This document shows, piece by piece, positions 50,468-51,317 of a DNA stretch of 64,000 nt. Origin of the DNA: Perna viridis (Eukaryota). Within the stretch, counting starts at the first letter, position 1; every line of letters starts with the position of its first letter. The position numbers and the translations under genes are program-made. The stretch is from NCBI GenBank assembly GCA_037379345.1, contig CM074519.1:36048103-36112102 (forward strand), written 5' to 3'. The notes beneath the pieces were generated by a model. The model did not search any database. It was not told the DNA's origin and saw only the letters and a list, made by a program, of their open reading frames with translations.

Positions 50468-50601
50468 ACCCACCACATGCAGTGTCCAGCTGAGCCAGGA
50501 ATGTTTGCTGGTGTACCATGTCATATATTTAATGATCCTCATCCAATGACCATGGCTTTATCTGTACTGGTCACTATTGAAATGCTCAATGCTTTGAACA
50601 G
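50468..50601 (+). CDS. ATP2A: SERCA alternative exon 24A ([44 protein letters not shown])
   Basis: gttacag| ... AG|gtaacc, 134 nt. Confidence 0.95.
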
Positions 50602-51183
50602 GTAACCAGTGCACACATTTATCTCCATCTGGTGGTGGTTTTATATGTTCTTTCTCACAAATACAGACAGGTGTTTTCTAACTTTTCATATTTTTGGCTT
50701 GTGACTTAAATTATGTTTATTGAACTTAGACTTTCTAATTTCCAAATTGTGGAATCATTACTATAGGTTTGACGGTACCTATATGAAACAGTTGTCTGTA
50801 TTTCCTCCTTTCTAATCTAAGGAATCTATGAACCATCTGAGTTTATGTCCTTTGGTCCAGATGAAAATAATGACTTCTGACTTGAAACATTCTAGTTCAT
50901 CCCACACTATTATCTTGTTTGTGGCTGTACAAAATCTATTTAACCTGTATGGTTCATAGAATCTGAATTGTTTGATGGTTTTTCTCCTTACAGGGTACAG
51001 CCTGGTGGCATCTATCCGGAAATCTCTACCTCTCAAAGCAGATTATTCATACAAATAACATGCTAATTGCCATTAATCAATTCTTGTTTTGGATCTTAAG
51101 AGTATGAATAGTCTTCTTTAGAGAATGAATGTCAAACACTTCTTCTTCCTCCTATTTATTTGATCACCAACATTTTTCCTCAG

Positions 51184-51317
51184 ACCCACCATTCCCAGTG
51201 CTTAGCCCAGGACCAAAGATTTCAAGGCATCAACTGTAACATATTCGACAGTCCTGAGCCGATGACCATGGCTCTGTCTGTACTGGTTGTTGTTGAAATG
51301 TTGAATGCTTTGAACAG
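51184..51317 (+). CDS. ATP2A: SERCA alternative exon 24B ([44 protein letters not shown])
   Basis: tttttcctcag| ... AG|gtaagg, 134 nt, same phases as 24A, no stop; absent from the ORF track. Confidence 0.92.

Follow-up and report, generated by a model that had tools for sequence, protein, structure and literature searches.

A tandem pair of putative mutually exclusive exons for the luminal L7-8 loop of SERCA in Perna viridis and other lophotrochozoans

We analysed a stretch of 64,000 nucleotides of the Perna viridis genome (assembly GCA_037379345.1, contig CM074519.1, positions 36,048,103 to 36,112,102 of the forward strand), hereafter called the window, to whose first letter all coordinates refer. 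A gene for SERCA, a P-type IIA Ca2+-ATPase, lies on its plus strand from approximately 2260 to 54561; stop-free stretches encode conserved SERCA segments, and the phosphorylation motif CSDKTGTLT is found in the open stretch 42057-42266. As judged from sequence and splice sites, a constitutive exon at 50014-50099 (+) encodes the end of M7 and the start of loop L7-8 (...GPKLNYYQL). This exon ends in phase 0, and its donor serves either of two alternative exons of 134 nt each: exon A at 50468-50601 (+; ttacag/ACCCAC ... GAACAG/gtaacc, slashes marking exon borders) and exon B at 51184-51317 (+; cctcag/ACCCAC ... GAACAG/gtaagg), which are separated by an intron of 582 nt (50602-51183, +). The acceptor for either alternative exon is that of the constitutive downstream exon at 53467-53584 (+), which encodes the end of M8, L8-9 and M9 (...SLSENQSL after the shared codon AG/T) and matches Pfam Cation_ATPase_C. 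E-values for the neighbouring exons were 6.7e-14 for Pfam Cation_ATPase and 8.4e-20 for Cation_ATPase_C.

Exons A and B are read in the same frame without a stop and align without gaps, 29 of 44 residues being identical (66% at the amino acid level). When the exon B peptide was searched against all six frames of the whole 723-Mb assembly, only two places were found (E = 8.8e-24 and 1.1e-12). As the assembly contains only these two exon copies, the pair represents neither a dispersed repeat nor a paralogue, and there is one SERCA gene. In a phmmer search of PDB chains, exon B matched rabbit SERCA1a over residues 871-914 (1IWO/1SU4 numbering; E = 2e-12) with no gap, and SERCA2 came next. By this alignment the two cysteines correspond to Cys876 and Cys888 and the glutamate to Glu908, the site-I Ca2+ ligand in M8. 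At columns 4 and 9 (SERCA1a residues 874 and 879), exon A has Met and Glu, its loop motif being QCPAEP, and exon B has Ser and Gln, with the motif QCLAQD. An earlier note on this DNA had described two 134-nt exons of the same phase with intact splice sites, 582 nt apart, that both keep Cys876, Cys888 and Glu908 and exchange the luminal L7-8 loop and M8. What the pair exchanges is the part of L7-8 between and around the two cysteines. Coordinates and splice sites were found to be as claimed, and the alignments of A with B and of B with SERCA1a bear out the remainder. The note's description of M8 as strongly different is not borne out: only 2 of 18 residues differ (VTIE versus VVVE), and this change is specific to this lineage, the annelid having VVIE and the flatworm LVLVE in both copies. 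The differences that consistently separate A from B lie in residues 874-882, with Pro-Ala-Glu-Pro in A of molluscs and the annelid and Leu-Ala/Val-Gln-Asp/Glu in B.

With an upstream exon that stops in phase 0 and alternative exons whose length of 134 nt is not divisible by three, only mRNAs with one of the two exons encode a pump, in agreement with the earlier note's claim that inclusion of both exons or of neither breaks the frame. If B follows A, it is read one base later and reaches a stop at its seventh codon; if both exons are skipped, the next exon is read from its first base and stops at codon 3. The intron ends around A and B are all of the GT...AG type (4/4), and no U12-type or AT-AC sites are present at the introns that flank them. 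The intron between A and B measures 582 nt in the window and 258-1433 nt in other species, a length that makes steric exclusion of the alpha-tropomyosin type unlikely. Conserved complementary intron elements of the Dscam/14-3-3 docking/selector type were not found between the introns of these species, which lack similarity. The stems returned by the search for intron RNA pairing, a weak test that short elements could escape, were all short, AT- or GU-rich and at the level of chance, and no complementary pairs of at least 12 from intron 1 were found in L007, a contig from a distant relative; neither intron comparison nor pairing search yielded a regulatory element for exon choice. U12, steric and docking-site mechanisms are thus unsupported by intron type, intron length and complementarity, and we infer that exclusivity is left to frame incompatibility, the wrong products being degraded, together with a regulated choice.

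The two donors differ in a recurrent manner. The exon A donor (CAG/gtaacc) has no G at +5, and this G is absent from the first exon in 6/6 lineages and present in the second exon in five of the six. Second-exon donors are near-consensus (CAG/gtaag or gtgag), the bryozoan gtatga being the exception; the strong exon B donor of the window (CAG/gtaaggagc) is shared with L007, L003 and the annelid, with identity over ten bases. This asymmetry may matter for regulation.

Relatives of the pair were sought by a profile-free scan of the exon B peptide against 1.8 billion representative proteins; it returned many exon-sized open frames from animal genomes, and the contigs concerned were then fetched. 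The pair was present, in the order A then B and between the same flanking exons, in L007, in L003/L004, likewise from relatives, in Biomphalaria glabrata (L013), in the annelid tube worm Lamellibrachia satsuma (L014), in the bryozoan Bugula neritina (L017), in the cestode Dibothriocephalus latus (L016, A copy broken by an assembly gap) and in the monogenean Protopolystoma xenopodis (L005; species according to PMC12294053). On L007, an 11.7-kb genomic contig, the upstream exon is followed by A-type and B-type exons, 258 nt apart, and by both downstream exons. In the six loci with complete exons (window, L007, L003, L013, L014 and L005), 12/12 exons are 134 nt long and bordered by AG and GT. Amino acid identity of the upstream exon (tblastn) was 93% with L007, 90% with Biomphalaria and 83% with Lamellibrachia; for exon A it was 91% in L007 and 84% in Biomphalaria, and for exon B 82% in L007. 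Gene models of the cuttlefish Acanthosepion pharaonis and the sacoglossan Plakobranchus ocellatus comprise a complete B-type exon preceded by a portion of an A-type exon. The metagenome contig L015 carries one copy only, so the pair is not universal.

Public gene models of Protopolystoma xenopodis (P0001), Plakobranchus ocellatus (P0154) and Acanthosepion pharaonis (P0165) fuse pieces of both exons through cryptic junctions or a retained intron. These are annotation errors caused by the exon pair.

A tandem duplication might have left exon B, or A, as a dead or never-spliced pseudo-exon, with only one protein being made. In comparison with L007, dN was 0.08 and dS 1.35 for exon A; for exon B, for which the earlier note had proposed calculating dN/dS, dN was 0.135 with saturated dS, and the next constitutive exon had a dN of 0.158. 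Values of dS against L007 were above 1 or not computable, and across the compared loci dN ranged from 0.08 to 0.30 with saturated dS. No intron similarity between the window and its relatives was detected by blastn, nucleotide similarity being confined to the exons and a few flanking bases. Exon B nevertheless keeps its length, frame, AG and near-consensus donor in six loci from four phyla, and spliced B-type exons occur in cDNA or metatranscriptome sequences from other species. For a pseudo-exon speaks that no spliced read or contig with exon B was seen in P. viridis, and no transcript fragment of this lineage in the protein collections, a blank that applies equally to A. We regard this explanation as extremely improbable: that frame, length and splice sites were kept while introns and synonymous sites were randomised indicates, at the level of sequence comparison, that exon B is not a pseudo-exon and that its protein sequence is under purifying selection. 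The absence of conservation in related species, by which the earlier note would have recognised a pseudo-exon, is clearly not what is found, as the pair occurs across relatives. Its view of an old duplicate under selection stands, and the duplicate, common to four lophotrochozoan phyla, is far older than the sequence alone could tell.

To assess exon use in RNA, a sequence was regarded as RNA-derived when it was a contiguous coding sequence spanning at least four exon junctions, and hence came from spliced RNA. Exon B was found in a Schistosoma japonicum cDNA (P0169), in the Tara metatranscriptome sequence P0185, which carries the cuttlefish B sequence, and in the JGI contigs P0170, P0171 and P0181, the JGI B-type contigs carrying the annelid B signature. 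Exon A was found in P0175, P0178, P0176 and P0180, among them several JGI contigs. Every RNA-derived sequence found, all from other species, contains exactly one copy; both types occur, and none has both. Among annotated models, that of Elysia marginata uses B and those of Biomphalaria, Bradybaena, Candidula and Lamellibrachia use A; some of the supporting proteins are computational gene models, not cDNAs.

These data also bear on the idea that the second exon is mainly a regulatory poison exon, whose joint inclusion shifts the frame and leads to mRNA decay, thereby tuning SERCA output. The stop at the seventh codon of B after A fits this idea, and the stronger donor of B makes double inclusion mechanically plausible. 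An open frame would not be needed for such a function, yet B is under purifying selection (dN 0.135, saturated dS), retains both cysteines, the M8 helix and Glu908, and occurs alone and in frame in spliced sequences of several species. A mainly regulatory role is thus highly improbable. From the conserved exon structure, the selection on both copies and the spliced sequences of other species, we consider it likely, with a probability of roughly 0.85, that A and B are functional mutually exclusive alternatives and form a lophotrochozoan-wide pair.

For P. viridis itself, read contigs from four probable RNA runs over window positions 49150-54700, with contigs resembling human DNA excluded, gave zero depth over every SERCA exon, while introns (by low-depth contigs) and the 3' UTR were covered. 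As the contigs over the exons were most likely among those left out, the zero exon depth says nothing for or against the use of A or B in this species. Short spliced fragments of this lineage were also sought in protein collections: the exon B frame and the upstream exon frame matched genomic open frames only, and with the Elysia protein as query neither an A nor a B fragment of this lineage was obtained; being equal for both exons, this blank is uninformative. Contigs that end 13 and 28 bases inside exon B might have marked a graph branch, but were rejected as too irregular. Likewise rejected was a putative second exon pair in marine metatranscriptome sequences (P0243 versus P0268/P0274): only a 120-residue middle is identical, the 871-914 exon and the ends differ, and chimeric assembly is most likely.

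We then considered whether the pair has one origin or several. Column 4 is Met or Thr in the first copy versus Ser or Ala in the second, and column 9 is Glu versus Gln, in 7/7 lineages each; these two columns, residues 874 and 879, are the only ones that separate the types everywhere. In the loop half, identity is 0.62 for the same type between species and 0.57 for A versus B within species, and the corresponding values for the M8 half are 0.84 and 0.90. The loop half thus groups by type and the M8 half by lineage. In a tree of the 44 columns, which is unresolved, A and B did not form clades: the two cuttlefish copies pair with each other (97/94), and the flatworm copy 1 lies inside the flatworm copy 2 sequences. 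A single clade for each type was not rejected by the AU test (p = 0.26 and 0.31).

The pair could accordingly be real and alternatively spliced, but have arisen independently several times, in molluscs and annelids, in cephalopods, in flatworms and in bryozoans. The cuttlefish and flatworm groupings, the higher likeness of M8 halves within species than between species of the same type, and the single copy in L015 are in line with this view. It is unlikely given that the A-then-B order, the exon borders and the signature of columns 4 and 9 are the same in 7/7 lineages, that the loop half is more alike within a type than within a species, and that the AU test accommodates one clade per type; co-adaptation to the other parts of the pump, or gene conversion, would be expected to make M8 alike within a lineage. 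In the window, the M8-coding halves (50546-50599 and 51262-51315) are identical in 10 of 13 comparable codons, versus about 34% between species, with a binomial p of ~0.002 before correction for 12 comparisons; in other species, A and B have about one third of these codons in common. These values hint that the M8 halves may have undergone recent gene conversion in this lineage. The earlier note had deduced an old duplicate from synonymous divergence in this conserved half: its conclusion on age is upheld by the phyla that share the pair, while the argument is weakened by the identical codons. As the tree of 44 residues is unresolved, a single origin rests on the column signature, and we consider one ancient duplication to be quite probable; on this reading, the membrane half later underwent co-adaptation or gene conversion.

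The 3' end of the gene also appears to be variable. The last coding exon (54361-54561, +) corresponds to a form with a long hydrophobic tail, and use of a candidate internal donor at 54478/54479 (GACG/gtaaaa) would yield a form with a short tail. In three probable RNA runs, contigs of 2.9-3.2 kb begin at 54449, which is 30 bases ahead of this candidate donor, and run past 54700. This start fits a choice like that of SERCA2a/2b, with a long hydrophobic tail by read-through versus a short one encoded by a downstream exon. The long and the short (...DDYPGFF) tail both occur in relatives; in the window, no exon coding for YPGFF was found downstream of 54300. A strict coupling of exon type to tail type was rejected, since both exon types occur with short and long tails in other species. 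Upstream of the last exon, at positions 53648-54032, word depth reaches thousands to tens of thousands in each of the four runs, and joints and loose ends are numerous; this segment is an abundant repeat or transposable element in the intron before the last exon.

Together, these observations are consistent with the following model. The exon for SERCA residues 871-914 would have been duplicated in tandem no later than in the ancestor that molluscs, annelids, bryozoans and flatworms share. An mRNA would take one exon or the other, giving two pumps from a single SERCA gene that are predicted to be identical except for the luminal L7-8 loop around Cys876-Cys888 and, in this species, two M8 residues near Glu908. 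Exclusivity would be imposed mainly by the reading frame, double or no inclusion leading to an early stop and presumably to nonsense-mediated decay, and the choice between the weak-donor exon A and the strong-donor exon B would presumably be made by trans-acting splicing factors. The two loops may alter regulation at the luminal face, through the redox partners of the cysteine pair or contact with a SERCA2b-like luminal tail, or may alter pump kinetics. More tentatively, as a reading that we consider less likely than not, one gene may have switched between L7-8 loops (Met874/Glu879 versus Ser874/Gln879) in a tissue- or state-specific manner from a time before molluscs, annelids, bryozoans and flatworms diverged, thereby altering the action of the Cys876-Cys888 redox switch, of luminal chaperones or of a SERCA2b-like tail on the pump.

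The cysteine pair is the site of luminal redox control, at which ERdj5, SEPN1, ERp57 and TMX1 are thought to act, and the role of this largest luminal loop of SERCA and of the Cys876-Cys888 pair is still debated (PMC7603117). The luminal tail of SERCA2b runs up to L7-8 and approaches its short helix Phe866-Ser870 (bioRxiv 10.1101/2020.03.28.012849); the alternative exon begins just past this helix. C-terminal splicing, as in vertebrate SERCA2a/2b and the isoforms of Artemia, C. elegans and Pinctada fucata, likewise produces several pumps from one gene, with a variable part that faces membrane and lumen, and the gene studied here also appears to have long hydrophobic and short tails as in SERCA2a/2b. 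C-terminal splicing, however, concerns only the 3' end of the mRNA, whereas the P. viridis pair is an internal exon in the conserved core (residues 871-914) that includes the helix of the Ca2+ ligand. As seen in vertebrate exon fragments, it is also the loop segment between Cys876 and Cys888 in which the paralogues SERCA1/2/3 differ, both cysteines and M8 being kept; those are separate genes with their own promoters, whereas here one gene has two exon copies that exchange 44 residues.

Ancient mutually exclusive exon clusters that arose by tandem exon duplication are known from muscle myosin heavy chain (PMC3912159). There too, adjacent homologous exons of equal length and phase are conserved across phyla and used one per mRNA; myosin heavy chain belongs to another gene family, and the SERCA cluster has two members. 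Another P-type ATPase, the Na,K-ATPase alpha of Drosophila and barnacle, also has mutually exclusive exons. In this P-type II ATPase, too, an internal exon swap alters a membrane or extracytoplasmic segment, but in a different pump and a different segment. An internal alternative exon or exon cluster in SERCA was not found in full-text literature searches, where the invertebrate SERCA splicing described is C-terminal only. The pair is thus apparently undescribed, and its forms may already exist as unnamed database isoforms.

SERCA is among the best-studied membrane pumps, and all the diversity described for it has arisen by gene duplication or by splicing at the 3' end. Pieces of both exons are wrongly joined in at least three public gene models and others silently pick one, so that comparative studies of invertebrate SERCA mix the types. 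An internal exon switch kept for more than half a billion years in four phyla would imply that the sequence of the loop is important enough to keep two versions of it. For experimenters, the pair offers two natural variants that differ in little else and, if the reading as a switch is true, a minimal 44-residue experiment on the role of the loop. If this reading is true, lophotrochozoans would have solved SERCA isoform diversity differently from vertebrates.
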